A DNA stretch of 64,000 nucleotides from Macrostomum lignano (taxonomy: Eukaryota): NCBI GenBank assembly GCA_002269645.1, contig NIVC01003248.1, positions 1 through 64,000 on the forward strand, in the 5' to 3' direction. A model generated the notes under the pieces. It searched no databases, had not been told where the DNA came from, and saw only the letters and a program-made list of their open reading frames with translations. How positions within the stretch are numbered: position 1 is the first letter of the stretch; each line of letters begins with the position of its first letter. Positions 10,447-61,865 of this stretch are shown piece by piece. The position numbers and the translations under genes were made by a program.

Positions 10447-10690
10447 TGGAGATCCCATTTATCCAGGTACAAATCTCTAATTAGGTATCCCATCATCCAG
10501 GTAGAAATCTCTAATTAAATATCCCATCATCCAGATAAAAATCTCTAATTAAATATCCCATCATCCAGATAAAAATCTCTAATTAAATATCCCATCATCC
10601 AGGTACAAATCTCTAATTAGGTATCCCAACATCCAGGTAAAAGTCTCTAATTAGAGATCCCCTTCATCCGGGTAAAAATCCGAACTATCG
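10447..10690. repeat. 34-bp minisatellite, about 7 copies (duplicated at 16424-16667)
   Basis: atctctaatt recurs at 10507 and 10541. Confidence 0.85.
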
Positions 10691-15790: not shown

Positions 15791-15791
15791 T
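15753..15791. other. Duplication junction with 26 nt of templated insertion and an 11-bp hairpin
   Basis: gcgctgct is a copy of 15737-15744; attatatcagt is the reverse complement of actgatataat (start of the duplicated unit); gttctatcag matches 21948-21957. Confidence 0.9.
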
Positions 15792-18578: not shown

Positions 18579-20525
18579 GTCGCGAGCTTCAAACAGCAGC
18601 CGGTAGTCACCCGGCAGTCTCAAAATGCCGGCCGTGCCCCGCAGAATTTCCTGCCGCCGCTCGGCGAACCCGGCCGCCAGGCGGACGCGGAACCGCTGCA
18701 GCACGGCTGCGAACACCAGATACACCTGCATTCGAGCCAGCGACCTGCCTGCGCACGCCCGGAGACCCAGGGAGAACGGAACGTTCTTGCTGGCTCTGGC
18801 CCGGTCGAAGTTGCCCTCGGCCGTGAGGAATCGCTCCGGCAGGAACTCGTCGGGCCGGGGCCAAACGCCAGCGTCTCGCGACATTCCGTAGACGAACGGG
18901 AAGATCAGCGCGTCGCTAGGGATTCGGTAGCCCCGGAAGACGGTGCCGTCACCCACGGCCCGGTGGAACATCCCGAGAGGACTGAGCGACACCAGCCGGT
19001 AAACTTCTTCGATGACCGCGCAGGTGACGGGTAGCCGGTCTTTGTCCCGCATCAGAGGTCGCCGCTCGCGTCCGACAATTTTGTCCAGCTCTGCGTGCAC
19101 TTTGGCCTGCCAGGCCGGCTCGAAGGCGGCGTAGAGCATCAGCCACTCCAGGCTGCGCGCGGTGGTGTCCGTGCCGGCGAAGAACAGATCCATCACCACC
19201 GAAATGATCTGACAATCAGCATTGCGTCATCACAGATGAAAGATGATCCTAATCGCAGATGTATGCTCTAAGCGCCCCACATCCAGCAATTCTGCCAATT
19301 CCGCTGACTCCTGAGCACATGCATGTACAAGCGCGCCAGTACTGTACGCAGGCACGGTCTCATACACAGCCTCAATCTGCCAATTCCGCTGACTCCTGAG
19401 CACATGCATGTACAAGCGCGCCAGTACTGTACGCAGGCACGGTCTCATCCACACCCTCAAGCAGGGTGTACAGCGGTCCTGCCGTGACTTTCTAATCGTC
19501 AGGCATGTACACTTTCTGTGCCTTGGAGATTGGCTGTCATGTGTGTGAATCGTATGGACGTATCGGCCCAGATACCCAGGTACATGCATATTTACCTGCT
19601 GATCCTTGAATGTTTCGAAGTCCCCGCGAGCCTCCGCCCGGCTCCTTTCCTGGATGTAGACGTCGCACAGGCACTCGGGCTGGAAGGCCTCCACGTCGGC
19701 TCCCATCAGCTCCCTGCGCTGTCGAATCTGACCCCGGATGAACTCCTGGTTGGCCGCGACCAGCCGGGTGAAGTCGCTGGTGTCCGGGATGAGCCGCACC
19801 AGCCAGTCCAGCTGGGGGAACAGAAACGACAGGCCCTGCAGCGGACGCGTGGCGAACAGGCCGCTGGCTGCCGAGCGAATGAAGTCCAGATCCGGGTCGC
19901 CACGCTTGAACTGTCGGCCGAGCGTCAGCGTGGCGATCACAGCGTTGCTGGCTTCGGAGAAAGTGTCCAGCACCTTCACTGGGCTGCCGGACTCGCTGGC
20001 CTCACGCAGGTCCGCCAGAATGTCATCCGTCTGGCTGTCGATCAACTTAGCCGAACCGTCTCTAGCGAAGCCGAAGTCCCTTAGTGTCCTCAGCGCGAGT
20101 CGCCGATGCATCTTCCACAGCGGACCTTCGCTGAACAGCAGGCCGCAGCCGCCGCTCTGCCGCTGGAAGATGGCAGCCTGGCACCTGCCCGTGTAGTTCT
20201 CATCCTGGAGCATCTCGTCCGCCATCGCCAAGTCGTTGACAATGACGAACCGCTGGGCGCCCAGCCTGTAGGAGATGAGCGGGCCGTACTGGTCGCACAG
20301 CCGGGCAATGGACTCGTGCATCCGGGTCGGGTCCATGCTCGGCAGTGACCCCAGCACCGGCCAGCCCCGGGGTCCTGGCGGCAGCGGCGGCTCGCTTTTC
20401 TTCCGCCTGCGGACGGCCCTGAGAAGCAGCGCCACCGCTGCCGCTCCCGATGCAACGCCAGTCAGAAGGAGCAGCGGTCGGTTCTGGGCGCAGCCGAGGA
20501 GCCAGTCGCCCGCCTTCAGCAGCAT
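18576..20525 (-). CDS. Cytochrome P450, CYP2-clan-like, 520 aa, copy 2 (exons 20525-19596, 19208-18576)
   Basis: ORF-track translations identical to copy 1; all P450 motifs intact. Confidence 0.95.
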
Positions 20526-21468
20526 TTGCCTGTTCTGTGTTCCTGAGGCCCCCGACTTCAAGTTGAAACTTTAAGAAAAGTGTTTCCACTTGGCCCCATA
20601 ATCGCATGATGTGGTTGGCGAAACGATGATGCAGAGTGCCTAAATAGTAGTTTTATACTCGTAGTACCGTGTTTAAAAGAATCGTACTCAGACCGAACTG
20701 TTCTCAAGCCTTTCCAGAGTTCCTTGCCTGTGAGAAAGTTCAGTTTTTTTTCTGTACATTCGCTTAGATTATACAGCTGCCTGAGAGGCTTTCTTGGGTT
20801 CTCGTTCGTCTCTTGCGGACACAGCTTCAAATACACAGCTCACGCTCCAAGTACTTTTAATTGTGAAGCAAATTACTTTCGAATTCCAAGAAAACAGAAA
20901 CACCTGTTTTGAGCTCAACTGTCTCTTTCAAATAATTTCTTTATTGCCTGTAGTTTTTTGACACGTACACCCAGGCACACAAACTCTGCCTCGGTCTGTG
21001 CGTTCTCTTTTGTTCTTGTCAATCACCTGGCCGGTTCAGCGGAGCGCTCGCATAGCAGAGTTTGCGCGAGAGTACATGCTGATGGGGCTGCGTCTGTGTT
21101 TCATGCAGCTTTCAGCTCAATTTCAAAAAAAGCATGCCAATTCGGGTTTTAAGTTGGAGATTTCTGAGCGCGCTGACAAACTTGGAGAAAGTTTAATTGT
21201 TCAAGAAAAGAATGCTATTTCTGTTAGCTGTCAGATCTATTTCCTGAGTGAGTCACCAATGATTCACGGCTCAATGCCAGGTGGGTTGGGCTATTCAATT
21301 GGTTTGATTTTATTGGCTGTAATTGCAGCTTACACAGGGAGCAGTTGGCAGGCATCGTTGGCTAAGCTATCGATTTCATATTGACAGACCATAAAAGGCG
21401 ACTTCAGTCTCGAGTAAACAAGAGACTTGGACCGAGCTCACTGTTCCGGTTGTTCTCAGCGCATCGAA

Positions 21469-24028
21469 ATGGCGTCTTGGCAGCAGCAGCAGCAGCAGCA
21501 GTCGAAAGCCGAGCTGGGAAAGCTCCGACGCAATGCACTGGTCTCCTTTGCTGAGAACACCTCAGCCCACGGAATCATGCACCTGACCCGGGGCTCAGGG
21601 GTCAGCCGCTTCATCTGGGTGGTGGTGATCGTGGGCGCCTGCGCCGGCTTTGCTCTGCACCTCAATGAGCTGGCCCAGCGGTACCTGAGCTACCCGGTGA
21701 GCACTGAGTTCTCCAGCGAGGGCGCCGACTTTCAGTTTCCGACTGTGACCATTTGCCCGACCTACTTCATCACTTACAACACACCTGCAATTGAAAGCAA
21801 TTATTCAGTACCGGGTGGGTGCGATGCCTTGCCAGTGTGAGCAGATGCTTTTGCATATCCTTACACATTTTAACTGCATGAAATCTCGCTTCTCTATGTA
21901 GGTCATTCCAGGAACCTGAACCAGATGATCTTCGACATCGCGCTGCTGTTCTATCAGCTGAAGCTGGACAACTGGAACGTCTCCATGCCGCCGGAGGACT
22001 TTGACTCGTATTATGACGGAAAGCTGGGGCTGCGGTCCCTCGCATATCGAGGAGTTCTGTTCCAGCTGCCGCATGAGACGGTCATCTACTGCCGGTACAA
22101 CTCGGAGCCCTGCTCCTATGAGAACTTCACCGTCTACAAGGATGAGGACAGGTGAGACAGAGTCAAACTTCATGTTAGAGAAATTTTAAAACTCTTCATA
22201 CGAAAGTTAAATTAAACTTCAGGTTCATGTGCCTGTCCTTTAATCCACTGAACCGGACGATCACGCAAGCTGGCGAGGGCAGCGGGCTGTACTTAGTGCT
22301 GTACAACTACGGCTTCTCGTTCCTCACCAATGCGGAGCTGGTGGACAATGTCCCCGGCTTCCGCGTGGCGCTGCACGAAAAAGGTAAGGCACTGTGCGAT
22401 CCTAGCGTTGAGGGTTAGGGTGGTCGCGAGCTCGGGTGCCTTGGACGTCTGCATTTAATGACATTCTCCACTGGCAAATGCGGTCAATACGGTCGTTCTA
22501 TGCACAAGAGCTGAACTGAACCCGCCAGCCCCCGCACAAAATGCAGGCTTCAAGCCCGACATGGTCTCAAGCTTCAACGCTCTGTTCGGCTACAAGACCT
22601 CGGCCCAGGTGACCGTGCAAAGCGAAACGAAGGTCAATCGAGCGGCTGCGGCGTGCACTGAAGACCTTCCGAACGTCACCTACACGGGGAACTTTTCGAT
22701 GCCTGGAAACTACGAGAACCAGAGCTTCTATGGAACAACTGAGGACTGCGTCATCAGAATCATGCAGGAGGAGTACCGCAACACCTGTAGCTGCTTAGGA
22801 ACTCACCTGCCGCTGCCTACGGACCTTATGAACGACACTGAAGTGTGTCACATGCTGCCTGAGGAGGTGGGGCCATTTTACTCTGGTACAAAATAGTTAG
22901 CAAAGCAGAAGAAATAAAATAAGCAAGGCAGTCAAGACTAACTTTGTTGCACTTCATTTCCAATGCAGGTGTTTTTCTTCGACATAAGGCATCGAAAAAA
23001 CGCTTTAAACATGACGGAGTACATCATCACAAATCGGAGCTGGGTGTACAACACACTGACCGAGTACCTGCAGCAGAACTGGGACGTGTACAACCGCACT
23101 GCGCAGCGGGTCAAATGCTTCCACCGAGTGCTGCAGCGCCAGAAGACGCATGGCGTGTGGGCCAAGCAGTGCCCGGTCCGCTGCAGCAACACCCGCTACA
23201 GCGTCACCACCGGGGTGTCCACCTGGCCCCGTGACACAACACTGGCGGTGGTCGCCGTGAGGGACTACGCCGCCGAACTGCTCAAGAAACTCGCTCGCAC
23301 CAACCTCTCCAGCTCGCGGCCGCAGATTCTGCACGACTACACTTCTTACATGATTGACAAAAAGTTCATCAGCGTGCTGGATCTGTACCCCAAGACCACC
23401 AAGATCAGCGTCTTCACCGAGTCGTTTGGATATCCTCTGAGGAATTTTTTCTCGGACTTAGGTGGCATTCTCGGTGAGTCCTAGCAGTTACCTAACTGTA
23501 ATCGCACCAAAACCTTTTTGGCCAGGGAGGTTGACGGCAACAAGTTGACTGCCGACGAATTGGGAGCAATAGTGAGGCCTAACGGCGAGCCTACGAGAAT
23601 AGAGCCAGAGGGAATCTTCTTAGTGTAAAATATTGGCTAGTGACTTTCCGTTAGCAACTGCTCCAGGAGACTTGTACCCAGTTCTAGGCTGGACATTGAC
23701 TACGTAGCATGGGGATGTAGAGTCCAAGGTTGAGCAATATGACCGCGCTGTAACTTCAGGCCTCTGGGTTGGAGTCTCGATCATCACCCTGCTGGAGATG
23801 GTGGAGCTTCTTGTCCAAATTCTGGTCCTGTCCGCATCCAAGCTGCAGTCGGGCGGCGGGCAACAGGTGCAACCACTCCAGGGCTCGCACCTCCAGGACA
23901 CGGAGTCACGTGACATCTATTCCTCCAAATTGGACTTGGATTGCAAGAAATCAACGGATCTGGAATCGGTTCGGGCCATGGAACAGCCGCAGTGCATTGA
24001 GGCGCTTGGAAATGAGCAGCGAATATGA
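21469..24028 (+). CDS. DEG/ENaC (ASIC/FaNaC-like) sodium channel subunit, 616 aa, 6 exons (21469-21814, 21902-22151, 22223-22383, 22547-22866, 22969-23473, 23760-24028)
   Basis: Pre-TM1 TSAHG; TM1; FPTVTIC; Cys-rich ectodomain; GFRVALH; TM2 SDLGGILGLWVGVSIITLLE with GxS filter. All introns GT-AG and phase-consistent (total 1851 nt). Confidence 0.93.
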
Positions 24029-29576: not shown

Positions 29577-32500
29577 ATGAGTGCTCGCAAAGATTTGAGT
29601 TACCCTGGGTTTCTCCCGACTTCCCGACCCCAGACTCTGGCCGGGCTTCTTGCCAGCCTCATCCTCATCGGCGTCGGCCGGCCCGATGTTTTGGCCGCGG
29701 ATCCTCGGCCTCGCGCCGCTGTCATCCTGCAGACGCCCGCCGGCTCTGTGGTGGCCGGCACCGAGGCCGTCCTGACCTGCCAGCTGGCGCAGACCGTCAG
29801 CGGAGCCGCCGACTCGCTGCGCCCTGCCGCCAGGCTGCGGTGGCGCCGAATCGACGGCGTCAAACTGGGCGCGGCCGGCAGGGTCCGGCAAGTCAACGGG
29901 ACGCTGCGGATGGCGCCAGTGCTGATGTCGGATGCTGCGGAGTACGAATGCGTGGCCTCTACGGAAAGTGAGTGAGCTCATGCGCTTTACTTGCTTGAGC
30001 CTTCCTTTGTGCTATTAATGCTGAGAAAACCCGCCCTGCCAACTCAAGCCGGTCAGCTGAAGTCGCCGCCAGCCCAGCTCACCGTGGTCCCAGCGGAGTC
30101 GGCAAAGTCTGCAGCCGGCCGGCCCGTCTTTGAAGTTCAACCGCGCGATCAGACGGTGCTGACTGGCGAGTCGGCGACCTTCCACTGCTCCGCCACGTTG
30201 GCTGCGAGCGGCTCCGGCGTCTGGCAGCGACGACGGCCCGCGCTCAACTGGCGTCGAGAGTCGCTTGATGGCAAGCCGCGACCGATGCCGCCTCCTGCAC
30301 GAATTCAGCTGCTGGACAACGGCTCGCTCACCCTGACTGGCGTGCTTGCCGCCGATGCCGGCAGGTGAGTTGTGGAGCTGCTGACTTTTCCAGAGTTTCT
30401 GTGCAGCACCTGACCAATCATGGGTCATGAATCTGTGCCGCACCTGACCAATCATCGGTCATGAATCTGTGCCGCACCTGACCAATCATCGGTCATGAAT
30501 CTGTGCCGCACCTGACCAATCATCGGTCATGAATCTGTGCCGCACCTGACCAATCATCGGTCATGAATCTGTACCGCTTCAATAGATTACTTCAGTTGAT
30601 TAACCAATGTCGCGCCGCAGGTACGTATGCGAGGCCGCCAGCGCGGTGGGTCCAGCTGCCGAGTCGGCGGCTTGCCTGACGGTGCTTCGGCGGCCGACTT
30701 TCACGGAAACGCCAGCTGACGTGACCGCGACCGTCGGCGACCGCATCGTGCTCGCTTGCCGCGCGGTGGGCAACCCACCGCCGACCGTCTACTGGTCCAA
30801 GGGCTTTGTCGACAAGCACCCGGACGATGACAGCGACGATGGCCTGCGCGTCGGGCCCGATGGTTCGCTGACGATATCGCCAGTGGAGCGCAGCCACGCC
30901 GGTCAGTTCCAGTGCCACGCCACCAACGCCGTCGGCTCAGCGCAGGCTGCCGCTCTGCTGCACGTTGTCGATTCTCCAGCCAGGTCGCCGTCTACTGCCG
31001 CCGTTCCGCTGTTCGCCGAGGGACCGCCGGAAGCGGCTTTTGTAGCTGAGGGCTCCCGGCTCCGGCTGCCCTGCCGTCTGGCCGAGCCTGTTGAAGGCAG
31101 CCGCGTCATCTGGCGGCGCGGGCGCTCCAGCAGCGACCAGCGCGAGCAGCTGCGGGCGGAGACGGATGGCAGCTGGCTGGTCGCCTCGGCTCGGCTTTCG
31201 GACTCCGGAAGCTACACCTGCGCGGCAGAAGTTCCCGGCTTCGGTGTCACGGAGTGGCCGGGCGCTGTCAACGTCACCGTCCTCGGCGGCGCAGCCCGGC
31301 TGCCAGCGCCGCCCATCAAGCGGTCGCCCCCAAAAGCGCCGAAATCCGTTGAAGTTTTGGACGCTGGGGGCGACTGGGCGCTGCTGCGAGTTGCGGACGC
31401 GTGCGGTCGCGTTTATCGGCTCGAGAGGCAGTGCACCGGACATCAGAGCTGGCGCCGGTACGCAGGTGAGAACAGGCGATTGCTGCTGCGGACACAGTCC
31501 GATGTACGCAAGAAATTTTACACCGAAAAAAAGATTTTCTGTTCTTTTGCTTCAGTCAGTAATTTAGAGCTTGGGAGAGCGACCCAATGGCGGCTGGGTC
31601 ACAAAACAGAGTCAAAGGGCGCCGTAGTTAGCAAGCAGGCAGCCGATGATTACGAGTTTGCACCTGGCACGAGTTTGCACGAGTTTGCTTTGGGTTCACG
31701 ATATTTGACTGCTCCAGTTAGACTGGCCAGCATTTGACTACCACAAACTGACTGACAACCGCAACTCTAACCCAACCCTAACCCTAGCCCTAACCCTAAC
31801 CATATCCCTTACCCTAACCCTAGCCCTAACCAGTGTCTGTATGAGTCTCTTGCTCTCAGTATTAAAGTTTATTCGCTCGATCCATTGAAACATTCGTCAG
31901 TTTCTGACGCTGAAAATTGAAATTGAGACAAATGTGTTACGAGTTACAATTATCGATCGCAACTGGAGTACATTACCGTCTCTCGTCGCTCGAACTCCCA
32001 CCGTCCAGGTCTGTTCGAGTCCCGCCTGCTGAAAGCTGACGGCCTGCCCGCCGAGTCCGAGTGCCGCTTCGTGGCTCGGGCCGTCACAGACTGCGGCGAA
32101 GCCCTCCTAGACTCCGCGGCTCAGCGGCCGCTGTCGGAGCCGTCGGGCGTATCAGCGCCGGTGCGCACCCCCCGGCTGAAACGGCGCCGGCACTGGCGAC
32201 GGCTGGAGCTGCGGGCTGGCGAGGGTCCCGGTGTGCCGGTGCGCGTTAGGGACCTGGCCGTCACGGTTGGTTCAGGGCGCAACCGGGTCGAGGGTTGGGA
32301 AATCTCGGGCTGATGGAAATGCAGCAGACGAACCAAAGCTTAGACAACTAAAACCGCCACTACTCATAGTATAAAGGTGAAATATATTTAACCTTTTGCC
32401 AGCCGCTTGACCGCTCGCTCTCCGTCGCCTCGTGGCGTCTCGAAGGCACCGCAGCGGCCCGCGCCCAAGTCATTGGATTCCGCGTCACCTACCGCCTGGA

Positions 32501-34800
32501 GCCGCTCAGCAACTGCTTAGCAACCGCCACCGTTGCTCCCGCTGCTGCTGATGACTCGCTGGTCGCTGGAGCCGCGGGATACTGCTCGCTCAAGGCGGGC
32601 CCAGCAGCCACAGTGGAGCACCTCCAGGATGCTAAGCTCGCCTTCCAGCATGGCGGGGCTTCGATGCCCGCCCTGGAGGATGAGACTGTCGACGTAGTGG
32701 CTGCAACCGATTACAAGGAGGGCCGCCTGCGGCACCACGCCCTGCTGCAGCGCCCGATGCTCTCCTTTGCCTGCTACTCGGTGCTGGTCCGGCCGCTGCC
32801 ACTGGGCGTCCCGGAGCGGCGACTCAGCCTTACGAGGGAGGCCGCACCATCCGCAGCTCCGACGAGCATCACGGCCGAGTGGCTGCCTGAAGTCGCGGGC
32901 AGCCAGCAGCTCCGAGTCGCCTGGATGGCGCCACCATTCAACCAGCGCAATGGCATCCTGACGGCAACGCAAATTTACATCTTCGGCCCGAGCGCCGATG
33001 GTGAGGGCTGGAAACCGGCAGCCGTGAAGCCGCTCAGCGTCCCGTGGCCGGCTCGGTCGGTGAACCTGAGCGGCTTGAGCCCCGGGCGCGGCTACAGCCT
33101 GATTCTCTCCTCGGCAAACTGCATGGGCGAGGGCGTTCGCTCCGCTCCGCTGCACGTCGGCCGGGGACTCCTCGGCGATGACGCCTGGTGGCGCGACCGG
33201 CGCCGGCTGGCGGCCTCGGCGGCGCGTGGGCCCGGCTTCCTGGCCGCGATGGCCGGCGGCGCCTGCCTCTGGCTTGGCCTGTGCGCCTTTGTGGCCTACG
33301 CCGTGCGGAGGCGCAGCGGCGGCTGGCTGACGCGGAGCTTCGCGCTGCGGGACGCAACGCCGCTTCCGCGTGGCGAGAAATCGGCAGCGCCGGCGATGAC
33401 CTCGGCGGACTCCTTCCCGCTGCTGCTGCCGCCGCTGCTGCAGCCCGCGTGGCGTCACCAGGAGCGCCAGCAGCAGCCATCGCTGGCCGGCCCGCAACAG
33501 CCGCCAGTGCGCGCCGCATCGCCCTACGCCAGCGCCAGCGTCGTGCGGCGAGTCGCCGGCCTCAGCGATGAATACAGTCTGGGTGGCGGTGGCAGTGCGG
33601 AGGCAGCTTCTGACAGGTCACGACTCATGACTATGCGTACAGGGCGCTTTAGCCAAGAACACTTGGATAATCTAACATTCTTCAGTATGCTCAAAATCTC
33701 AAAGTAAATCTAAGGCCTATTTGAACTGTGCATTGGGGATCGGCCCTTATAGGCGCTAATCAACCATTTTTGTACACCAGCCCTAAACTGCTGGTGACTT
33801 TTGCCCCAGAGAGGCAGACAGGCTACCGCCCTGCTGCACAGGCCACCCACCTATTGAACGCAATCTCTAAGCAGTAAATTTAATCCAAGATCATCGAGAT
33901 TCTCCTGCAGAAGCTGCCGCTAGCACCGCTGCCCGCCTCTTTTTCCAACAGATTCACCCGGACGCCCGACGCATTCAACAGTCAGGGGCAGCCTGGCGGC
34001 AGCTTCTCGCAGCCTCCCAGTCTGCCGCTTCATCAGCAGAGCCCCGGTTTGGACGGCCACCTGAGCCGCAGCAGCCGCTGCCGCCGAATCCGCCGCCGAC
34101 GCCGCCGCCACCGCCGCCGATTCCGGGAGCTGTCGGTGTCGACTTCGGACAGCGACGAGCTGCGCGCTGCAGCGGAGGCGGCGGCGACTGCAGCAGGAGT
34201 GCCATTCGCCATCTGACTGCCATTCGCCATCTGACTGCCATTTGCCATCTGACTGCCATTCGCCATCTGACTGCCATTCGCCATATGACTGCCATTTGCC
34301 ATCTGACTGCCATTTGCCATCTGACTGCCATTCGCCATCTGACTGCCATTTGCCATCTGACTGCCATTTGCCATCTGACTGCCATTCGCCATCTGACTGG
34401 CATTCGCCATCTGACTGGCATTCGCCATCTGACTGGCATTCGCCATCTGACTGGCATTCGCCATCTGACTGGCATTCGCCATCTGACTGGCATTCGCCAT
34501 CTGACTGGCATTCGCCATCTGACTGGCATTCGCCATCTGACTGGCATTCGCCATCTGACTGGCATTCGCCATCTGACTGGCATTCGCCATCTGACTGGCA
34601 TTCGCCATCTGACTGGCATTCGCCATCTGACTGGCATTCGCCATCTGACTGGCATTCGCCATCTGACTGGCATTCGCCATCTGACTGGCATTCGCCGTAG
34701 CCGTTTTGGCCTGATGTTTCACGAGTTTATAGACTTTAACTTGGCTACTGAAGATCAGGAAATGTCAAATAACTACAGAAATTCACAGCCAATGCATTAA
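29577..34800 (+). CDS. robo: Roundabout-like receptor: signal peptide, 4 Ig, 3 FN3, TM, CC1/CC2-like motifs; about 1290 aa (exons 29577-29967, 30049-30364, 30621-31465, 32009-32265, 32403-33616, 33951-34800)
   Basis: Ig Cys/Trp/YxC motifs; FN3-3 WMAPPFNQRNGIL; Robo-type TM PGFLAAMAGGACLWLGL; SPYASASVV (CC1-like); LPPNPPPTPPPPPP (CC2-like); phases consistent. The end of exon 4 and the extent of the last exon are less certain. Confidence 0.8.
30407..30575. repeat. 34-bp intronic minisatellite, about 5 copies
   Basis: gtcatga recurs at 30424 and 30458. Confidence 0.9.
31767..31831. repeat. Degenerate (CCCTAA)n telomere-like tract in a Robo intron
   Basis: ctaacccaaccctaaccctagccctaaccctaac...accctaaccctagccctaacc. 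Confidence 0.7.
34201..34697. repeat. 18-bp minisatellite (gccattcgccatctgact), about 27 copies, in frame with the last Robo exon
   Basis: Direct reading; frame open from 33951 to the stop at 34800. Confidence 0.95.
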
Positions 34801-42420: not shown

Positions 42421-43235
42421 TGTGGGCTGTCTGAAATGCAACAGTGGCGCAGTCGGAACCCAGCTATAGAAGTCACTCTTAGGCTGCATGCAAATGCAAC
42501 TCACCCGCTGCGGGAGACTTTGCTGGTGCGTGGATTTTCCTTTCAGTTGGGCAATCCCTCCCGCAGCTGTTCCCCTATTTATCGTTGCTGCCTAAACAGA
42601 AATCCCAAACCGATGGGTACAGGATGAGCCCCGAGCAGCCAATAAGCAAACCGGAGTCGCCCTGCCCTCGCGCTGGAAATTCTGCCTTGCTGACAGCCAG
42701 CTAATCCCGATTTCCGATGCCGACCAGGGAGATGCTGCCCAGCTCCATCTTTTGATTGGAGTTTGCTCGTCTCTTTAGGGGCTCGGTTTGTCTTGCAAAC
42801 ACTGACCATCTGGCCAGTTTTGTCACCATGGGAACAGTGCGACAACAAAACTATCTCTAGTTCTGGTGAAAAGTTAAGCTTTACATTGTCCCCACTATGT
42901 AAGCAGGTTTATTTGTTACCCCCGCTCCTGGTGGAAAGCCGCAGGACTACTCACAGAGGCATCGATCGCTGCTCCCCTTAATGCCCTCGAGTAAAATATT
43001 TGAGATGAGGCCGTCCGCAAACGAGAACTGATTTTGGCAACAGCCTCTGTTCTCTTCTCTGGGCATCAGTTCTCTGTGTAAAATAGGAATTCAGGTTGAC
43101 TAGTGCAGTTTAATCATACACATCACTGTAAGAATGCCCAAGGGTTTGAAAAAGTCACGAAATTAGTTTATGAGTCACATCGTAGGAAAACTTTCTCAGT
43201 GAAATGCTGACGCAGAGGGGAAAGGGTTGGTTTTG

Positions 43236-44125
43236 CCCATTCTGTGCTAAGAGACATCATATCCGATGGTTTCGCCCATTCTGCGCTAAGAGACATCATA
43301 CCCGATGGTTTCGCCCATTCTGCGCTAAGAGACATCATACCCGATGGTTTCGCCCATTCTGTGCTAAGAGACATCATACCCGATGGTTTCGCCCATTCTG
43401 CGCTAAGAGACATCATATCCGATGGTTTCGCCCATTCTGCCCTAGGAGACATCATACCCGATGGTTTCGCCCATTCTGTGCTAAGAGACATCATATCCGA
43501 TGGTTTCGCCCATTCTGTGCTAGGAGACATCATACCCGATGGTTTCGCCCATTCTGCCCTAGGAGACATCATATCCGATGGTTTCGCCCATTCTGCGCTA
43601 AGAGACATCATACCCGATGGTTTCGCCCATTCTGTGCTAAGAGACATCATATCCGATGGTTTCGCCCATTCTGCGCTAAGAGACATCATACCCGATGGTT
43701 TCGCCCATTCTGCGCTAAGAGACATCATACCCGATGGTTTCGCCCATTCTGTGCTAAGAGACATCATACCCGATGGTTTCGCCCATTCTGCGCTAAGAGA
43801 CATCATATCCGATGGTTTCGCCCATTCTGTGCTAATCGACATCATACCCGATGGTTTCGCCCATTCTGCGCTAGGAGACATCATACCCGATGGTTTCGCC
43901 CATTCTGCGCTAGGAGACATCATACCCGATGGTTTCGCCCATTCTGTGCTAGGAGACATCATACCCGATGGTTTCGCCCATTCTGTGCTAGGAGACATCA
44001 TACCCGATGGTTTCGCCCATTCTGTGCTAGGAGACATCATACCCGATGGTTTCGCCCATTCTGTGCTGAGAGACATCATACCCGATGGTTTCGCCCATTC
44101 TGTGCTGAGAGACATCATGTCCGAT
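43236..44125. repeat. 39-bp minisatellite, about 22 copies
   Basis: Unit cccattctgtgctaagagacatcatacccgatggtttcg; 13-aa periodicity in the ORF track. Confidence 0.96.
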
Positions 44126-44929
44126 GGGATGTGGCTAAACGTTTCTCGTGTGCGGCACAAAATGATAGCTATTTTACAATTTACAAAACTAAAAAGCGAC
44201 AGATAAGTGTCGTGGTGTGTGCTGTTTGTTACGTAATCGGAAGCATTTACGATATCCGCCATTTATGCTCTTACTTTTGTAAACGCTGGCCACTCTGTTG
44301 TCATGCAGTTGAGATGCAGCTAAGCAATCCGAGCAGTCTTGGCGGATGCTGAACTTCATACGGGAGACGGAACTGTGCCTGCAAAGGGAAATGACAAAAA
44401 ACTTGATCCGGTTATTGCACTGCGCTACCGACGTCCTTTAATCAGTCTACACGCATAGCAAGCTGAAATAAATCGCGCACAATATCCGAAATACTCAGAG
44501 AGCACAAAACTCACTGGAGCGATTTCGGTGTTTCGACAGGCAGTTGCGATCGGAGCTGAAATAATTCCCGAGTTGGGAACTAGAGAAGCACTTTTCTGCT
44601 CAGAGCGTGCACCAAGTTTGCTGTCTTTGCATCCGGTCGCTCGGCTAGGCTAGCGCTTGTAGAAGACTTTATTTGTCCCTCCAGACACGAGACAAAACTC
44701 GGGGCAGCTGCTAAAGGATATTAAGGACACCATTTTGATGTTTTTCCTATCCGGACTGAACTATACTTAATGAGCGCTCTGTGTCCAGAGTGAGCAAAGT
44801 AACGCCTGCTCGGACACTTTTATACAAGTAAGCAAATATGGTTTTCTGGCATAAAGTCAATTCCAAAGTTAAACATTTTTGTCCAGTCTCTTATTGAGAT
44901 GCAGCAGTGCAGCCCGCTCTCCCGCACCC

Positions 44930-46350: not shown

Positions 46351-48150
46351 ATGGATTTCATACGCTTGTCCGTCTTGCCGACAGATCTCCTACTTCAAGC
46401 CACCAATGAGGAATTCAAAGAGGAGTCCGAGACGACGCTTCCAGGCCGAAGGGTGTCGAATCTCAGCACAGGCTCGAACGATGATGCAACAGTTGTTCAT
46501 CGGGTTTGTTCCAGCCGGTGTGTGGAGATAATGCCCCTCCTGATTAACTCCAGCTTCAAGTCTAAGTACTGGACCTTCAAGACAGTCGCCATGCCAGACT
46601 GCTACGTATTCTCGCACAGGAGTTCGCGTTGCATCATCCTGGAAGTGGTTACCCGATTCCCGGAATCGCAGACTGAGAACCTGCACTCGTACAAGTTTTC
46701 CGCGCACCCATTGTTCGAGGACAAAGTGAGCACCTACACTAGGTGGAAAGGAAAGGACACGCCAAATCAAAACCTGGTTCGCTCCAGGACTTGGGATGTG
46801 GCACTGAATGTAGTGATGAAGATTGAGGCCGTGCCAGCTCCGTTTAACAAGTACCGTTACCTGCTGAAGCGTGAGTCGGAAATCCTGCAGTTTATGTGGG
46901 ACAAGTACCTGGACTCCGGCGCCGACATCGATGAAATGACGGGGATTCCTATGCTCTTCGAATACCAGGAGGTGCCGAACGACACTTTCTATGTGACAAC
47001 AAGCTCTAACCAAGTCGACGAGATTGACCAGTTCGGCAAGATGAAGCCGATCAGCTTCCCGCCTGCCTCAGACCAGCGAACGACCCTGTCGTACATGACG
47101 ATGGAGAAGTTGGGGCCCAATCTCAGCTACTTGCAGCGGCTCGTCAAGGCCGCTCAAGCACCGCCGTATACATTCGATTTGTGGACAGCAGCAAAGATAT
47201 TTGACCAGCTCATTTGCCGCATCCTGCAGGTGCACAAGTCAGGCGTCGTGCACAATGACATCTCGCCGGAAAACATCTACATGGGAAACGGAGTCGCATT
47301 CGACGTGGTCTACCTGAACAACTACAAGCGCTCGTACATCGTGGCCGAGGGAGATAAAAAAGGTCCGTCCGGCTTGGCCTCCTCGTCCATCGGCTGCAAC
47401 GTCCGGTTTGCCTCGGTAGGCCAGCTGAGTGGGTCGGTATACAACATGAGCCCCATTGACGATATTGAGTCGGCATTCTACGTGTTGCTGGCCATGCTGA
47501 GCGGCGACTCTCTGCCTTGGGACGGCGTGCTGCGCTTAAAGCGAACTTCGGAGTATTCGCTACGCGGCGCTTCGTCCAACTCCAATGCTCGAGTGAACAA
47601 CACAGTCACTGAGGAACAAAAGATGCAGATCCTGCCAACCCGAATCTCTAACGAGACTCTGAGAAAGGTGATGAATTTCAAAAATCGATTTTGGCAGTCA
47701 TCTCAGCTTGTTAACCTTGTCCTGTCCAACTGTCACTGCCTGTTTTCGGGTGACGCAAAGCAGGCGTCGAGTGTCGCGATGTTCATTACAGATTTGTACC
47801 TCCGGGTGCGGGACTGGCGACAGAACTTCAAGTCCTGCGACGACTACTATCAATACTCCAAGAAGCTCAACCGCTCATCCAGCGAGGAGTTCCGCCAGTT
47901 CATGGAGCTGCGCAAATGCGCGCTAGTTTACTTCGAGTTTTCCGAAACTTTTGACATACTCAACGACATCACTTTCCGCAAGAAGGTGGACCAGCTCAAG
48001 AATGACTCGGTTACCCAGCAGCCATGGAACGCTTTCGTGTGGTGCTTCAATAATATTGAAATCACGACGCAGAGCAAGAGGTCCGTCTCGTTTGTCTCCT
48101 CGGTTGCGCAAGGCTTCCGGAGAAAGTCAGTTGCGCCCACCAGCAGGTGA
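46351..48150 (+). CDS. Intronless casein kinase 1-family (CK1/TTBK/VRK-like) probable pseudokinase, 599 aa
   Basis: VVMKIE; LKRESEIL; GIP; MEKLGPNL; HNDISPEN; LNNYK in place of IDFG; GCNVRFAS; DDIESAFYVL; GDSLPW. Confidence 0.85.
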   Translation: MDFIRLSVLPTDLLLQATNEEFKEESETTLPGRRVSNLSTGSNDDATVVHRVCSSRCVEIMPLLINSSFKSKYWTFKTVAMPDCYVFSHRSSRCIILEVVTRFPESQTENLHSYKFSAHPLFEDKVSTYTRWKGKDTPNQNLVRSRTWDVALNVVMKIEAVPAPFNKYRYLLKRESEILQFMWDKYLDSGADIDEMTGIPMLFEYQEVPNDTFYVTTSSNQVDEIDQFGKMKPISFPPASDQRTTLSYMTMEKLGPNLSYLQRLVKAAQAPPYTFDLWTAAKIFDQLICRILQVHKSGVVHNDISPENIYMGNGVAFDVVYLNNYKRSYIVAEGDKKGPSGLASSSIGCNVRFASVGQLSGSVYNMSPIDDIESAFYVLLAMLSGDSLPWDGVLRLKRTSEYSLRGASSNSNARVNNTVTEEQKMQILPTRISNETLRKVMNFKNRFWQSSQLVNLVLSNCHCLFSGDAKQASSVAMFITDLYLRVRDWRQNFKSCDDYYQYSKKLNRSSSEEFRQFMELRKCALVYFEFSETFDILNDITFRKKVDQLKNDSVTQQPWNAFVWCFNNIEITTQSKRSVSFVSSVAQGFRRKSVAPTSR

Positions 48151-49165: not shown

Positions 49166-52100
49166 TCAAAGGGTGGCGTGGCACAGGGCGATCTTGTCGA
49201 AGGTCACAAATGTGCCTTGGTTCTGCTTGCTGCAATTGAGTTGAGTTTGGGTTTCAGTGCCAATTGCAAAACAGCTTAAAAAAAGAAAGCAAAAAGTGCC
49301 GAAATTTCCTGCTGCCTCACCACTGGAAATACCGCCGCCCGTCGAACACTCCGTCGTGCTTCCCGGCCAGCCCGTCCGCCAGCTCCACGCCAACGTAGGT
49401 GCCCTGCCGGCCGTGCAGACTGCCGACATATCGGACGCGGCCGCGGGTCAGGCGGCCTCGACTGCCGCAGAACTCAACAAGATCGCCTTGGCGGAGGTCT
49501 GACTCACTGCGAGGCGCAAAGGTTCGCGGCTGGCGTTGCTGGTGCGCCGGTGGCGCCTGTGGCAAGGACGGAGGCACCGTCGAGGACCAAACTGGACGTC
49601 GCGGTTGTACCGGTGGCGGCAGCGGGCTGGAAGCTGTCCCATCGACATCGCGATCGTCGTTCCGTCCCAGGATGTCATCGACGGCGTCATCGACATCGTC
49701 GTCAAAGTCTGTGCGCGGTGGTCGTCGCCGATTATTGCGCCGTCCAGGTGTCGTTCGACGAGGTTGCGGATCCTCGGCCAGTGAGGCGACGTCGTCGCTC
49801 TCAATGTCGTCCAAATCCAGTCGACGGCGTCGGCCAAGAGTTGATAAAGGAGGTGGTGGAGGCAACGGCGGCGGCTCCAGGATCCGGTAGCTTGGCTGTC
49901 GGTGGCCTGCGCGAATCCTCGGAGTCAGCGGCGGATCTGGGGAGTTTTGATGCTTGAGTAGTTATGCATCATAGCTACTCGTGGCCAGTAGAAACAAACA
50001 AATAAAATTATATAACTCCTATATAAGGTTAGGAAGCGCAATATTTACTGCAGAAAATAATTCGTTCCCTGTAACAATGTAACAATAACGTTCCCTGAAC
50101 ACTGCCACAGAATATACATATTCTGTGATTCACTGGTCTTAATTTATACCCGGAATTAGTAGCAGAAAATACTGGTACAGATGTAATACGATAGTCGATT
50201 TTTTTATAATGAATAAAAATATCCTTTGGGTATCATCAAAATTGGTTCTCAAACGAGAGCTGTGAGTCGAGCCTGTGTCCAACATGCCCATTGGATGTTC
50301 AACTCGACTGTACAAGCCAGGCTCTCACCATAGTCGCTGCGATGAGAAGTCAGCCCGGACAGAAAGGTACGCTGCAGGTTCACTTCATCTTTGAGTCGAA
50401 GATTCTCCCGTTGAAGCTCATCGGAGCGAATTCGCGTTAGCTCCAGCTCGCGGCGCAGCTCGTCTAGCTCGACCTGCAGGTGGGCGCACTGGTCGTGGCC
50501 TCGGTGCCGCAGTCGGTTCAACTGCGGGTCACGTGGGTGTCAGGGAAAACAGCTAAATGTTGAGAGGTGAATGACTAGCTTGTACGAGTACGGGCAGAGA
50601 TGCTGGTGGAGGAGGGGGCTTTTCGAAGCGCAACCGGTGGTTAACTGAATCGCATGAACCGACCAGCTGAATAGGACGAAGGGAGAACAGGGAATTGAAC
50701 AGTCATTGATCAGTGAGGCCAAGCATGCAGGGTTCAGCAATCAAGCAAAATGGCACCTCGTTCCGGAGCACCCGATTCTCCACCACAAGCTCGTCGACGG
50801 TGGCCTGCAGCCGTGCATCGCTTGGCGGCTCCCAGGCTGGAGGTGGGGGCGGCGGTGGTCCGCTGTAGTCGGGGTTGGCACGCAGGCTCTGATTGGCGTC
50901 GCTCAGGTTCAGCACCTGTGCCTCCAGATCGGCTGGATGCAAGGAGCGCCGGGATGGGAAAAGAAAATTATAATATGAGCTACGAAGTAGCAAAGTAAGA
51001 GAGAATTGTTTGGGGAACTCGGTAATAGAGTAGCTACTCACCAATTCTGCGATGCAAGGCGTCTGGTGAGATGAATGGCGGATCAGCTGCAGGTGGTGGC
51101 GGCGCTTCCTCTGCTGGAGGCTGCAAATAATCAGAGTTTTCGTTACTTTATACGCCTTAACTTGCACAAAATTTTAACTTTTAACTTACGTCTTCAACCG
51201 GGGGATCTTTAGAAGAGCTGGCCTTGCTTTTCCGACTGCTGCTCTTTTTGCTGCAGCTACTTCTGCTACTAGCACTGCTACTGCTGCTGCTGCTGGACTT
51301 CGCAGATCTGCGAGAACTTAACTCTGCCTTCGCATCGACCTCATCCAACCCAGCAGACTTTTCTTGCTTGCCAAGGTTTTCACCTGCTATCTGTGCTACA
51401 ATGGATTCCTCATCAACAACTGATGGTGCTTTCGATGGCGTCTTCTGACCTTCGTCTACAACTGATGGAGGCCTCGATGACGTCTTCTGACCTTCGTCGA
51501 CAACTGATGGAGGCTTCGATGGCGTCTTCTGACCATCGTCTACAACTGATGGAGGCTTCGATGGCGTCTTCTGACCTTCGTCTACAACGGACGGTGGGTT
51601 TGATGGCGTCTTCTGTCCTACGTCTACAACTGATGGAGGCTTCGATGGCGTCTTCTGACCTTCGTCGACAACTGATGGAGGCTTCGATGGCGTCTTCTGT
51701 CCTTCGTTGACAACTGATGGAGGCTTCGATGGCGTCTTCTGACCATCGTCTACAACGGACGGTGGGTTTGATGGCGTCTTCTGTCCTACGTCTACAACTG
51801 ATGGAGGCTTCGATGGCGTCTTCTGACCTTCGTCGACAACTGATGGAGGCTTCGATGGCGTCTTCTGTCCTTCGTTGACAACTGATGGAGGCTTCGATGG
51901 CGTCTTCTGACCATCGTCTACAACTGATGGAGGCTTCGATGGCGTCTTCTGACCTTCGTCTACAACTGATGGAGGCTTTGATGGCGTCTTCTGTCCTACG
52001 TCTACAACTGATGGAGGCTTCGATGGCGTCTTCTGACCATCGTCTACAACTGATGGAGGCTTTGATGGCGTCTTCTGACCTTCATCTACAACTGACGGTG

Positions 52101-53457
52101 GGTTTGATGGCGTCTTCTGACCATCGTCAACAACTGATGGAGGCTTCGATGGCGTCTTCTGACCATCGTCTACAACTGATGGAGGCTTCGATGGCGTCTT
52201 CTGACCTTCGTCTACAACTGATGGAGGCTTTGATGGCGTCTTCTGTCCTACGTCTACAACTGATGGAGGCTTCGATGGCGTCTTCTGACCATCGTCTACA
52301 ACTGATGGAGGCTTTGATGGCGTCTTCTGACCTTCATCTACAACTGACGGTGGGTTTGATGGCGTCTTCTGACCATCGTCAACAACTGATGGAGGCTTCG
52401 ATGGCGTCTTCTGACCATCGTCTACAACTGATGGAGGCTTTGATGGCGTCTTCTGTCCTTCGTCGACAACTGATGGAGGCTTTGATGGCGTCTTCTGACC
52501 TTCATCTACAACTGACGGTGGGTTTGATGGCGTCTTCTGACCTTCGTCGACAACTGACGGAGACTTCGATGGCGTCTTCTGACCGTCTACAACTGATGGA
52601 GGCTTCGATGGCGTCTTCTGATCTTTGTCTACAACTGATGGAGGCTTCGATGGCGTCTTCTGACCTTCGTCGACAACTGACGGAGACTTCGATGGCGTCT
52701 TCTGACCGTCTACAACTGATGGAGGCTTCGATGGCGTCTTCTGACCTTCGTCTACAACTGATGGAGGCTTCGATGGCGTCTTCTGACCTTCGTCTACAAC
52801 TGATGGAGGCTTCGATGGCGTCTTCTGACCATCGTCTACAACTGATGGAGGCTTCGATGGCGTCTTCTGACCATCGTCTACAACTGATGGAGGCTTTGAT
52901 GGCGTCTTCTGACCTTCATCTACAACTGACGGTGGGTTTGATGGCGTCTTCTGACCATCGTCAACAACTGACGGTGGGTTTGAAGGCGTCTTCTGACCAT
53001 CGTCAACAACTGACGGTGGGTTTGATGGCGTCTTCTGACCATCGTCAACAACTGATGGAGGCTTTGATGGCGTCTTCTGACCATCGTCAACAACTGATGG
53101 AGGCTTCGATGGCGTCTTCTGACCATCGTCTACAACTGATGGAGGCTTTGATGGCGTCTTCTGACCTTCATCTACAACTGACGGTGGGTTTGATGGCGTC
53201 TTCTGACCATCGTCAACAACTGACGGTGGGTTTGATGGCGTCTTCTGACCTTCATCCACAAGTGATAGAGGCTTTACGGGTGTTCTAAGGCCCTCGTCGA
53301 TAGCGGACCCCTTTGGAGAAATATTTTCTCGCTGGCTGTCAATGTCAGTAGCTCTACCACTGACTATGTGCAGCAGTGGTGGATCAGCTTCAATCCTGAA
53401 GTTTTCATCTTCTGAATTCCCTTGGTCTTCACCGAACTGTTGATCTTGAAAATCCAT
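49166..53457 (-). CDS. Repeat-array / coiled-coil / C-terminal CAP-Gly protein, 1131 aa (exons 53457-51190, 51120-51042, 50932-50757, 50521-50329, 49936-49321, 49229-49166); may have further 5' exons
   Basis: CAP-Gly GRVRYVG...YVGVEL...GKHDGVFDGRRYFQC...GTFV is completed across a phase-2 intron; heptad-rich exons; all phases consistent (3396 nt); AG lies immediately before the ATG. Confidence 0.82.
51410..53260 (-). repeat. Coding 42-bp repeat (KTPSKPPSVVDEGQ), about 44 copies
   Basis: Read from the 758-aa ORF; the only length variants are two 3-nt in-frame deletions. Confidence 0.95.
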
Positions 53458-59535: not shown

Positions 59536-60944
59536 TTATTATTTTACAATATTAAATTTGACAATATGAAAATACCATCCATTATAACGTAATAACTGGT
59601 TAATAGTACATTAATACCCATGCTTTAAGGGCGTTAATAGGAAAATCAGAGGGCGCCTACGGCGTCCTTGACATAGACATTATTCATTATTGTGCCATAG
59701 ACATTTGTGTCCTTGACAAAGTGGGACAAAATTAGCTAATTTGCATTAGAGTAAGTTTGAAATAGACAATCGGGCGTTAAATGTCATTAACTGCCCGCTA
59801 ATTTGCATTTAAAGTAAGTGTGACTCCTGCAAGCGGGCTTAAATGTAGTTTATGGCATTAAAAGGCAAGAATAAGTGCCCAGCGGGCACAAAGGACATGG
59901 TACAATAAGTATTTCGTGTTCTTTAATTGTCCATAGTTTATTCAATGTTTGCGCTAAAATATATTCAGTTGCCATAGACAACTGAATTATGTCTATGACA
60001 ATGTCTTACGCGCTGTTTCTTTTACACTAAAAGGATTGAAGATTGAAGGAGTGAAGTGAACTTTTCACTTGTAGTTTGTGGTCTACAAGCTTGTAGCTTA
60101 TAATTTGTAACTCGTATGAGACGTAATTAAACGGGAAGTTTTTATTACCATGTGATCTGAATGACTTAAATGCTGCAGTAACATGTACCTGGTCAGTGAA
60201 GTTCGCATAGAGCTAGATTGCCAAAATTTCGAGTAAAAATGCCTTTCCTCAGACTCAACATTTAACTAACGAAACATTGACTCTTTTCAAATGTTTTTTT
60301 CTACTTTTTATATTGAAATGTAACATGTACGTCATTTTAATTTTGGATGCAGCTTGTAATTTAGTCAGTAGGAAATGACGCACTGGAGGCAGTGCTTTTG
60401 TCAAGAAGGCATCAAATACAGCATATGGAGGTGAAGCCTGCTTGGTGCTCGGCTCGCAGTTTGCAGAGAGATGGGGCTTACGGGACTGCGATTTAGCCCA
60501 GCAACTCTGGCCTTCTGTGCTCTCCCAGCTTTGCTGAGTGGACGGAAGTTAAAGTTATGTGGCTTTCCAGCCTGGCAGAATGAGCATGCACCTGATACTA
60601 GCAGTGCTGAGTCCAACTCAATCCTGATTCGCTGTCGGTGGTTGAGCGGCCAGTAACTCCCCCTGAATAAACACTAATATAGCAGGCTCCTGCCGTGTGC
60701 ACCCAGTGAGTTTCTCCCGCAGTTGTTAAAAGTTCCTATTTTGCAAGAAATCGATCGTGAAGAGCTGAGAATTCCAGCAAGAAAATAAAATCTTGTTCTC
60801 TGTGACTTGCCTGCGCAGTTGACAGCTGTCTCAGACCGAGCGCGTGAAGTCAATTACATACAGTAGCTCGTATTGGTTGCATTAAAGCAGCAACAGCCAC
60901 GCGATCGAGTAATAAAATTTCAGACAACTGTTCAGTTGATTGAA

Positions 60945-61865
60945 ATGCGCCACAGAAATGCCTTGTTTGCAGCCGCAGTGCTCAGCACATGCATTTGCCT
61001 GCTCCTGACCATCGGGGGAGGCGGCAACGGAGCAAAATTAATAAAGGGCGCGCAAAGTTCGACACATATGAACCCCGCAGGCAACCCATCAAGAAGAGAC
61101 GCAAGCGGCACTAAAAATGCAAGCTTAAAGGCGCAAGCACGCGCATCCAATATCATCAAAATCTTGCACCAGAGCTGGAAGACCCGCCAGCTGCCGGCCA
61201 GAGCTGTGCGATGGAGCGCCAGCTGGAAGTCCTGCTTTCCCGACTGGGAGTGGCGCCTGTGGACCGACCAGGACAACCTGGCTCTGGTGCGAGACCATTA
61301 CGCCTGGTTTCTGCCGGTCTACAACGGCCAGAGGTACAACATCGAGAGGGCCGACCTGGCCAGGTATTTTTATTTGTACCATTTTGGCGGCATCTACACA
61401 GATCTGGACACGGTGTGCATGAAAAACTTCGAGCACCTGCTTCACTTAGAGACTCTCGTGTTCGGCGCCATGGACACTCACCCAGGTGACTCAGTGCTTC
61501 CCGGACAGCTGGTGCAGAACTCCTTCATGGCCTCCCTGCGGCCGGGACACCCGTTCTGGATGCGTCTTCTCAGAAGGATCGAGCGAAACTTCAATGCTGG
61601 AAAGAGAGGTCGGCCGGAGGACAACACGGGGCCCACGGTGCTCATGGAAGAGCTGCGGCTCTACGTGCGCAGCAACGCCTCCGACGTGAAGGTTTATCCC
61701 GGAAAGTACTTCAACCCATTCAGCTGGACGCTGAGGAACAGCAAAATCTGCAAGGACTTCGGCCAGATGTCCGACTCGGTTGAAAAGATCTGCATAAATT
61801 CCTTTCCCAAGGCATTCGTTGTACAGCTGCACACGCAGAGCTGGGGCCGGGGTCGCATGAGGTGA
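60945..61865 (+). CDS. Intronless type II membrane glycosyltransferase, GT32 (DXD sugar-binding, OCH1/SUR1-like), 306 aa
   Basis: N-terminal signal anchor; KILHQSW; WEWRLWTD; ADLARYFYLYHFGGIYTDLD; NSFMAS..GHPF; TGP; KYFNP. Confidence 0.9.
   Translation: MRHRNALFAAAVLSTCICLLLTIGGGGNGAKLIKGAQSSTHMNPAGNPSRRDASGTKNASLKAQARASNIIKILHQSWKTRQLPARAVRWSASWKSCFPDWEWRLWTDQDNLALVRDHYAWFLPVYNGQRYNIERADLARYFYLYHFGGIYTDLDTVCMKNFEHLLHLETLVFGAMDTHPGDSVLPGQLVQNSFMASLRPGHPFWMRLLRRIERNFNAGKRGRPEDNTGPTVLMEELRLYVRSNASDVKVYPGKYFNPFSWTLRNSKICKDFGQMSDSVEKICINSFPKAFVVQLHTQSWGRGRMR

Follow-up and report, generated by a model that had tools for sequence, protein, structure and literature searches.

The CAP-Gly proteins recognized in cytoskeleton research form a mammalian list that comprises CLIP1-4, DCTN1, KIF13B, TBCB, TBCE, CYLD, and CEP350. 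The gene described here lies on the minus strand at 53457-49166 of the first 64,000 nucleotides (nt) of contig NIVC01003248.1 from the flatworm Macrostomum lignano (assembly GCA_002269645.1), a stretch referred to as the window. Its predicted product of 1131 amino acids (aa) combines a tandem array of 14-aa units, long helices, and a single C-terminal CAP-Gly domain. Sequence comparison gives good support for placing the gene in an ancient metazoan family that has no name and is defined by coiled coils and CAP-Gly; the gene is a divergent member of it, and the array is an addition particular to this lineage.

TBCB shares with the window protein a coiled coil followed by a C-terminal CAP-Gly domain and is its top structural match. 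It is, however, a protein of ~240 aa with an N-terminal ubiquitin-like domain, whereas the window protein has 1131 aa, no ubiquitin-like domain in Pfam, and the array. p150Glued and CLIP-170/CLIP-115 likewise combine a CAP-Gly domain with a Ser/basic-rich stretch and a long coiled coil, and their CAP-Gly domains match at E = 4e-10 to 2e-9. CLIP-170 and CLIP-190 contain tandem CAP-Gly domains at the N-terminus and, at the C-terminus, zinc knuckles and an EEY/F-like tail, while the window protein has one C-terminal CAP-Gly domain, the tail CHATL, and no zinc knuckle by Pfam. In p150Glued an N-terminal CAP-Gly domain precedes a basic region and the dynactin coiled coils and shoulder; here the order is reversed, the CAP-Gly domain alone matches, and no dynactin domain is found by Pfam. 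Only the CAP-Gly domain aligns with KIF13B, which adds a motor and an FHA domain, and with CEP350, a protein of ~3000 aa with an internal CAP-Gly; Pfam gives no kinesin motor or FHA match. An earlier reading made from the letters alone (the sequence-only reading) had set this protein apart from CLIP-170, p150, TBCB, KIF13B, and CEP350, and domain order, Pfam content, and size all bear it out.

A second group of described systems appears analogous in its repeats. Neurofilament-H/M KSP side-arms, MAP1B/Futsch, and the proline-rich regions of tau are also disordered tandem repeats rich in Lys, Ser, Thr, and Pro that sit on a cytoskeleton-binding module. The side-arms carry a proline-directed kinase site in each unit, which in the window protein is a putative site read from its consensus. 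There is no sequence homology to these proteins; the anchor here is a CAP-Gly domain, and the unit is charge-neutral owing to its acidic half.

The family to which the gene belongs was delineated by searching 1.84 billion representatives exhaustively with HMMER, the query being P0001, a paralogue model from M. lignano. The search returned 1971 hits, many of them proteins of 340-2090 aa with a CAP-Gly domain that ends within a few residues of the C-terminus, and 30 clusters were given source names. Sequences and a motif scan define four elements common to the family and the window protein: two coiled-coil motifs (CC1 and CC2), a lead-in to the CAP-Gly domain, and the loop GKHDG within it.

CC1 has the consensus YxPNxPxALQRKIADLQSQVQDLQEANE and reads FISPDALHRRIADLEAQVLNLSDANQ in the window protein, where it is encoded by exons 2 and 3. 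At its family core, LQRKIADLxxQxxDLQEANE, the comparison is LHRRIADLEAQVLNLSDANQ versus LQRKIADLQSQVQDLQEANE, and the window protein matches the motif (Y/F)xPxxPxxLQRKIxDLxxQxxDLQEANE. CC2 has the consensus RERNYKLHEENLKLKEE and reads RIRSDELQRENLRLKDE in exon 4; it matches R(E/D)RNxxLxEENxRLKEE. The lead-in differs from the consensus RPFAPRS by one substitution (RTFAPRS), and its Pro8 is at least 90% conserved in a 27-member alignment. The loop is identical to the consensus GKHDG (G[KR]HDG), with His60 invariant among the same 27 members, and across the last 92 residues the window protein shares 40-53% identity with the other members.

Named members include the coral Montipora and the molluscs Mytilus, Argopecten, Biomphalaria, and Elysia, together with a nemertean, a rotifer, a tunicate, and a second M. 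lignano paralogue group (P0011). Vertebrate members come from lampreys, sharks, chimaera, gar, sturgeon, bowfin, coelacanth, caecilians, frogs, turtles, and Anolis. Examples are Mytilus galloprovincialis A0A8B6E8N6, Biomphalaria A0A2C9LH93, Lineus XP_064629721.1, Latimeria XP_014343284.1, Anolis XP_060626120, and M. lignano A0A1I8FCT9. A Capitella member was also seen in a profile search with the CAP-Gly alignment, which otherwise returned mostly unnamed fragments and no characterized members. The proteins are annotated as "uncharacterized", as "CAP-Gly domain-containing protein", or with low-complexity misnomers such as "dentin sialophosphoprotein-like" and "myosin-11-like", and Pfam sees only CAP_GLY in them. 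No mammal, bird, teleost, insect, or nematode occurs among the 30 named clusters, which is no proof of absence; for mammals, the absence agrees with the human CAP-Gly gene list. A literature search on CAP-Gly in Macrostomum or flatworms found nothing relevant. On the sequence evidence, a coiled coil together with a C-terminal CAP-Gly domain marks out a pan-metazoan family that is unnamed and uncharacterized.

This outcome revises the description of the architecture as unfamiliar: it is so relative to the named CAP-Gly families but not relative to the unnamed one, which has the whole C-terminal layout, and only the array itself is unshared. The sequence-only reading had held that a plain orthologue of a known CAP-Gly family with the same layout would overturn its view. 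Half of this was found, namely a shared layout, in a family without a name and without the array. It had also proposed an orthologue search with the non-repeat parts; the search with P0001 led to the present coral-to-lizard family.

Family members and the window protein have in common a long, disordered N-terminal part rich in Ser, Thr, and Pro. They differ at the tail, which is CHATL here and MAWE or MAWAP in the family, and in polyproline inserts between and after the helices, which the orthologue alignment marks as M. lignano-specific. Many invertebrate members start with a ~100-aa domain of the form "C(K/R)(Y/F)RW.KT ... YTFE.DLY.KD" that Pfam does not recognize; the set bearing this domain or a zinc-finger-like motif comprises P0022, P0028, P0040, P0043, P0065, P0076, P0082, P0088, P0108, and P0139. 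A tblastn search for this "CKYRWAKT..." type of domain upstream in the window found none. P0108 and P0139 begin with a Cys-x2-Cys...His zinc-finger-like motif that is not in the window gene. Between CC2 and the CAP-Gly domain, orthologues contain a second conserved short motif, D(S/T)x(T/S)(D/E)(I/V/F)L(L/I/V), exemplified by SDTATDILL, SENTDVLI, and DSDSTDFLL; the window protein reads AVDDILG at that place, in exon 5.

The gene model was built from consensus splice signals and consists of six exons that end in a TGA stop. All five introns are GT-AG with matching phases and lengths of 69-392 nt. The joining of exons was judged from splice signals, phases, Met content, paralogue models, and comparison with orthologues. 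Exon 1 (51190..53457, minus strand as throughout the gene; 2268 nt, residues 1-756) runs from the ATG at 53457 to the donor GAC/gtaagt, which lies two codons before the end of a 758-codon open reading frame (ORF) at 51184 and is in phase with exon 2. It encodes a unique acidic N-terminus (53287..53457; residues 1-57; net charge -10; no signal peptide evident by eye), the array of 45 14-aa units KTPSKPPSVVD[DE]GQ (51412..53286; residues 58-682), and a Ser/Lys-rich linker that holds the alternative donor GCAG/GTGAAA (51190..51411; residues 683-756).

Exon 2 (51042..51120; 79 nt) encodes Pro-rich sequence and the start of CC1 (FISPDALHRRI), and exon 3 (50757..50932; 176 nt) encodes the remainder of CC1 (ADLEAQVLNLSDANQ), a PPPPPPP insert, and the start of helix 2. 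The long helix with CC2 is in exon 4 (50329..50521; 193 nt). Encoded by exon 5 (49321..49936; 616 nt) are the tract PPPLPPPPP, stretches of basic and acidic residues (RRRRLDLDD, DFDDDVDDAVDDILG), the lead-in, and the greater part of the CAP-Gly domain with its loop. Exon 6 (49166..49229; 64 nt) supplies the final CAP-Gly strands (CKQNQGTFVTFDKIALCHATL) and the stop. The CAP-Gly domain with its lead-in thus occupies 49166..49532 (residues 1041-1131) and is split by the 91-nt intron 5. A further acidic tract, DFDDDVDDAVDD, is also present in the protein.

Met1 is the sole Met in the 1131-aa product. The exons downstream of exon 1 therefore need an upstream start, and the coiled-coil/CAP-Gly part is not translatable alone. 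Exons 2-6 are confirmed by tblastn with P0011 and by alignment to orthologues, and the inclusion of exon 2 is supported because it bears the start of a motif conserved across phyla. A long N-terminal region precedes CC1 in all orthologues. Directly 5' of the ATG at 53457 is an in-frame TAG that also forms part of a good candidate acceptor, ttttccgattag/ATG, which could serve in spliced-leader trans-splicing and is a lead rather than a result; 38.8% of M. lignano genes are trans-spliced (PMC5730564). The gene is almost certainly real.

The elements that the sequence-only reading had placed at 49166-53457 are all present with exact coordinates, on the minus strand. The Ser/Lys-rich linker, the polyproline and acidic tracts, and a CAP-Gly domain with GKHDG are all visible in the translation, the last of them also by Pfam. 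The proposed joining of the repeat exon to the CAP-Gly domain in one gene agrees with the in-frame six-exon model, its GT-AG introns and fitting phases, and two paralogue models. The coiled coil had been assigned to two exons; the helices stand, but a further exon of 79 nt (exon 2) separates the repeat exon from the first large coiled-coil exon, and the helices accordingly span exons 2-4.

The C-terminal 449 aa of the protein match three M. lignano UniRef proteins at 97%, 89%, and 71% identity, with one further weak CAP-Gly match. This three-paralogue pattern fits the partly duplicated M. lignano genome. Codon usage had suggested an insect (Drosophila-like) gene, a reading excluded by the 97% identity to M. 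lignano. In the paralogue models P0001 and P0002, repeat units are joined to the same downstream exons and CAP-Gly domain. P0002 fits use of the donor GCAG/GTGAAA (~51390, just past the array) with splicing directly to exon 3, leaving out both the Ser-rich linker and exon 2. P0001 is consistent with a weak donor within one of the repeat units (GAAG/GTCAG) and an acceptor located 7 nt into exon 2. The frame is preserved in both models, which could be real isoforms or prediction artefacts.

Pfam recognizes the CAP-Gly domain between residues 1069 and 1123 of the 1131 (CAP_GLY, E = 4.3e-18). Its best sequence matches in the PDB are p150Glued, CLIP-115, and KIF13B (E = 4e-10 to 5e-9). An AlphaFold2 model of the domain from the family alignment has a predicted local distance difference test score (pLDDT) of 93.7, and the top 44 Foldseek matches of the PDB are all CAP-Gly domains, the best being TBCB 1whg with a template modeling (TM) score of 0.76 and a root-mean-square deviation of 1.9 Å. 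A single-sequence AlphaFold2 model of P0001 rendered this domain poorly, which the family-alignment model mended. The same P0001 model predicts one helix of 27 residues (56-82) and one of 80 (102-181), with pLDDT reaching 98; these cover CC1 and CC2, whereas the repeat units and linkers have pLDDT <50. The long helices probably form a dimerizing coiled coil. TBCB typically has GKNDG in the CAP-Gly loop, and the Asn to His replacement that gives the present loop is conservative, with EE[Y/F] peptide binding reported to be unaffected (PMC3806363).

The array was detected by Tandem Repeats Finder at 51416-53274 with a period of 42 nt, 44.4 copies, 90% matches, 0% indels, and a score of 2857. Translation of the 758-codon ORF divides it into 45 units, which are a degenerate first unit (RTPVKPLSLVDEGQ), 41 full units of 14 aa, two of 13 aa, and a truncated last one. 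Its sites are 33 TPSK and 10 TPSN, in keeping with the ~44 units, most with TPSK, counted by the sequence-only reading. The whole protein has 51 [ST]P sites, of which 35 are full [ST]Px[KR] sites; the array's TPSK account for 33 of these, with TPVK from the degenerate first unit and a single TPGR making up the rest. These 35 clustered sites fall in a region predicted to be disordered. Within the array 81 Lys and Arg are balanced by 81 Asp and Glu for a net charge of 0, and Pro makes up 21% and Ser plus Thr 22% of the residues.

Variation between the units follows the codon. The mismatch of a unit to the next is 0.018, 0.018, and 0.219 at codon positions 1, 2, and 3 (chi-square p = 1e-43), and of the 14 columns for each codon position, 10 vary at the third, 4 at the first, and 3 at the second. 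Codon-phase bias is only weak in six further arrays of the window whose period is a multiple of 3. Because variation among units is concentrated at third codon positions, the array is coding and is translated in this frame. The frame is intact over 1875 nt, and the sole indel is an in-frame deletion. Two such 3-nt deletions had been counted earlier; the two shortened units are there, but both sit in a 123-nt internal duplication, so that a single deletion was copied. The 6-unit higher-order blocks in the same account are also real, the strongest being an exact match of 311 nt between stretches spaced 252 nt (6 units) apart, but they are not uniform, since exact matches of 179 nt with a spacing of 168 nt (4 units) and of 96 nt with a spacing of 123 nt (the 3-unit duplication) occur as well.

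Full [ST]Px[KR] sites number 35 in the window protein versus 0-9 in other family members. Density of [ST]P was considered as a trait of the family and rejected, with 4.5 per 100 aa in the window protein versus 0.5-2.6 in the other members. Since all copies descend from one amplified unit, the 33 TPSK represent one evolutionary event and not 33 independent sites. Judged by its distribution, the array is a young, lineage-specific amplification.

The explanation that we favor assigns a role to each part of the protein. The long helices would pair two chains, and the paired C-terminal CAP-Gly domains would, as expected from the domain family, dock on the EEY/F tails of tyrosinated alpha-tubulin or EB-type proteins. 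The N-terminal part of ~680 residues is predicted to be disordered and would project from this anchor. In this paralogue group, one 14-residue unit was probably amplified ~44 times by unequal exchange, which would yield a charge-neutral, Pro-rich polyampholyte arm in which a candidate Thr-Pro site for proline-directed (CDK/MAPK-type) kinases recurs every 14 residues. Once phosphorylated, the neutral arm would become strongly negative, with a change in its extension or binding. A microtubule-anchored, phospho-tunable projection, or entropic brush, is a plausible inference from the sequence. The identity of the gene as a family member is well supported and the mechanism is inferred, and the account taken whole, from family membership and an EEY/F-docked dimer to a disordered arm and a phospho-tunable array, merits an even degree of belief and disbelief.

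Several observations weigh against this account. In ten units the +3 Lys is replaced by Asn. At -2 relative to its Thr the unit has Gln, where Cks1 priming prefers a hydrophobic residue or Pro. In an alignment to p150, the position of Phe52, which we take to be part of the groove wall, is Gly here and that of Trp57 is Tyr, so that EEY/F binding cannot simply be assumed. The UniRef paralogue models are themselves predictions that use other donors and skip the Ser-rich linker. Tandem arrays crowd the window, with 26 rows from Tandem Repeats Finder. No other family member has the TPSK array, and neither does the second M. lignano paralogue group (P0011). When the N-terminus plus repeats served as the query, 5.8 billion proteins yielded no homologue at E <= 1e-3; the array is therefore young and may be functionally neutral.

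This last point is the substance of the strongest competing explanation, in which the array is a neutral coding minisatellite. The protein would work like its orthologues, and the array would be a tolerated recent expansion, an inert spacer at most, whose TPSK sites lack regulatory meaning. Confinement to one paralogue group suggests this, as do the loss of the +3 Lys in ten units and the exact internal duplications of 311, 179, and 96 nt, which indicate continuing turnover. Tandem arrays are common in the window, and 15% of the M. lignano genome consists of simple or tandem repeats (PMC5730564). The Mytilus and Argopecten orthologues also bear arrays in the same region, unrelated to this one (EGSLHGSDRRTPL and GSPAPASYHGSAT). 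Neutrality is harder to reconcile with the strong amino-acid constraint, in which codon positions 1 and 2 are near-invariant while third positions vary, and with a frame held over the full array with an in-frame deletion alone. The charge balance of 81 to 81 is likewise unlikely to arise from accidental drift. We consider the minisatellite explanation unlikely, yet a serious contender.

The array may instead act as a multivalent motif scaffold. Family members contain a short motif in their N-terminal region, [ST]P-x1-6-PhiPhi[DE]D(PhiPhi)G, where Phi is hydrophobic, and the unit may be an amplified degenerate copy of it. The array would then bind many copies of one partner, perhaps in a phospho-dependent manner, and produce clustering or condensation on microtubules and not a brush. 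PhiPhi[DE]DPhiPhi occurs 36 times in 39 representatives versus 1.4 expected from shuffles, and lies 1-6 residues after [ST]P in 10 of 38 members versus 0.1 expected, for example in KMSPAVVDDVLG and PKSPDIVDDVVGDEI. The vertebrate form of the N-terminal PhiPhi[DE]DPhiPhiG motif is DVVDDVVGDE. In the window protein, the unit TPSKPPSVVDDG provides 37 matches to the motif's first part. This fit, seen in TP-SKPPS-VVDD-G, extends only to the first half, [ST]P x1-6 PhiPhi[DE][DE]; the unit lacks two hydrophobic residues before Gly, and the strict motif has no hits in the window protein. The resemblance was noticed post hoc, no partner is known, and P0011 has no clear copy, which together leave the scaffold improbable.

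A broader proposal joins this motif to the favored mechanism. The family would be an ancient animal class of microtubule/EB-associated proteins, present from cnidarians to reptiles and lost in mammals as sampled, which would be regulated through a conserved motif beside a phosphosite in the disordered N-terminal part, [ST]P...PhiPhiDD...G, and Macrostomum would have amplified this element ~44-fold as a multivalent, charge-switchable array. We put it forward as a doubtful conjecture.

It is highly improbable that the gene model is an artefact, with the 2268-nt ORF a mere open frame through satellite DNA that is unexpressed or separately transcribed and the CAP-Gly gene a fragment or pseudogene. 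Repeats do often leave open frames (a 467-aa plus-strand ORF runs through the same array) and the exact product is not present in the protein database, but the codon-phase bias (p = 1e-43), the ATG and gtaagt donor exactly at the ends of the ORF and in phase with exon 2, the lack of Met in the downstream exons, the two paralogue models that connect repeat units to CAP-Gly, and the long N-terminal regions before CC1 in all orthologues all argue against it.

The gene points to a further CAP-Gly family beyond the mammalian list, well conserved from corals to lizards. M. lignano is tractable to transgenesis and RNA interference, so the function of the family could be probed there. As 44 near-identical TPSK units on a charge-neutral backbone, the array would be an unusually clean natural substrate, with possible use in examining how multisite proline-directed phosphorylation alters a disordered arm on a microtubule-binding module. 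If the array is neutral, it would be a clear case of a coding minisatellite under amino-acid constraint.

Convergent with the CAP-Gly gene is an intronless ORF of 599 aa at 46351-48150 (plus strand), which encodes a divergent kinase of the CK1/tau-tubulin-kinase-like type. Its similarity to CK1 delta (E = 5e-11) and TTBK1 (E = 1e-8) is confined to the C-lobe region (residues 247-402), with a Pfam Pkinase match below threshold. A functional link between this ORF and the CAP-Gly gene was considered and found no support; by eye, the repeat unit misfits the primed or acidic CK1 consensus.

Elsewhere in the window, the Tandem Repeats Finder rows have periods of 3-85 nt, and several lie in long ORFs (43228-44127, period 39; 34203-34696, period 18). 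Such arrays fit the repeat-rich M. lignano genome. Two further plus-strand ORFs are apparently unrelated to the CAP-Gly gene: one at 30607-31737 has two immunoglobulin domains (Ig_3, E = 2e-25), and one at 60873-61865 has a glycosyltransferase DXD sugar-binding region (E = 2e-17). The region 9500-21700 contains a tandem segmental duplication of ~6 kb, with 88% identity at an offset of 5977 before a 45-nt array and an offset of 6202 after it. Each copy includes a cytochrome-P450-like ORF (13028-14359 and 19230-20561; Pfam p450, E = 6e-26) and an ORF that runs through a 30/45-nt array (11533-12408 and 17510-18610).

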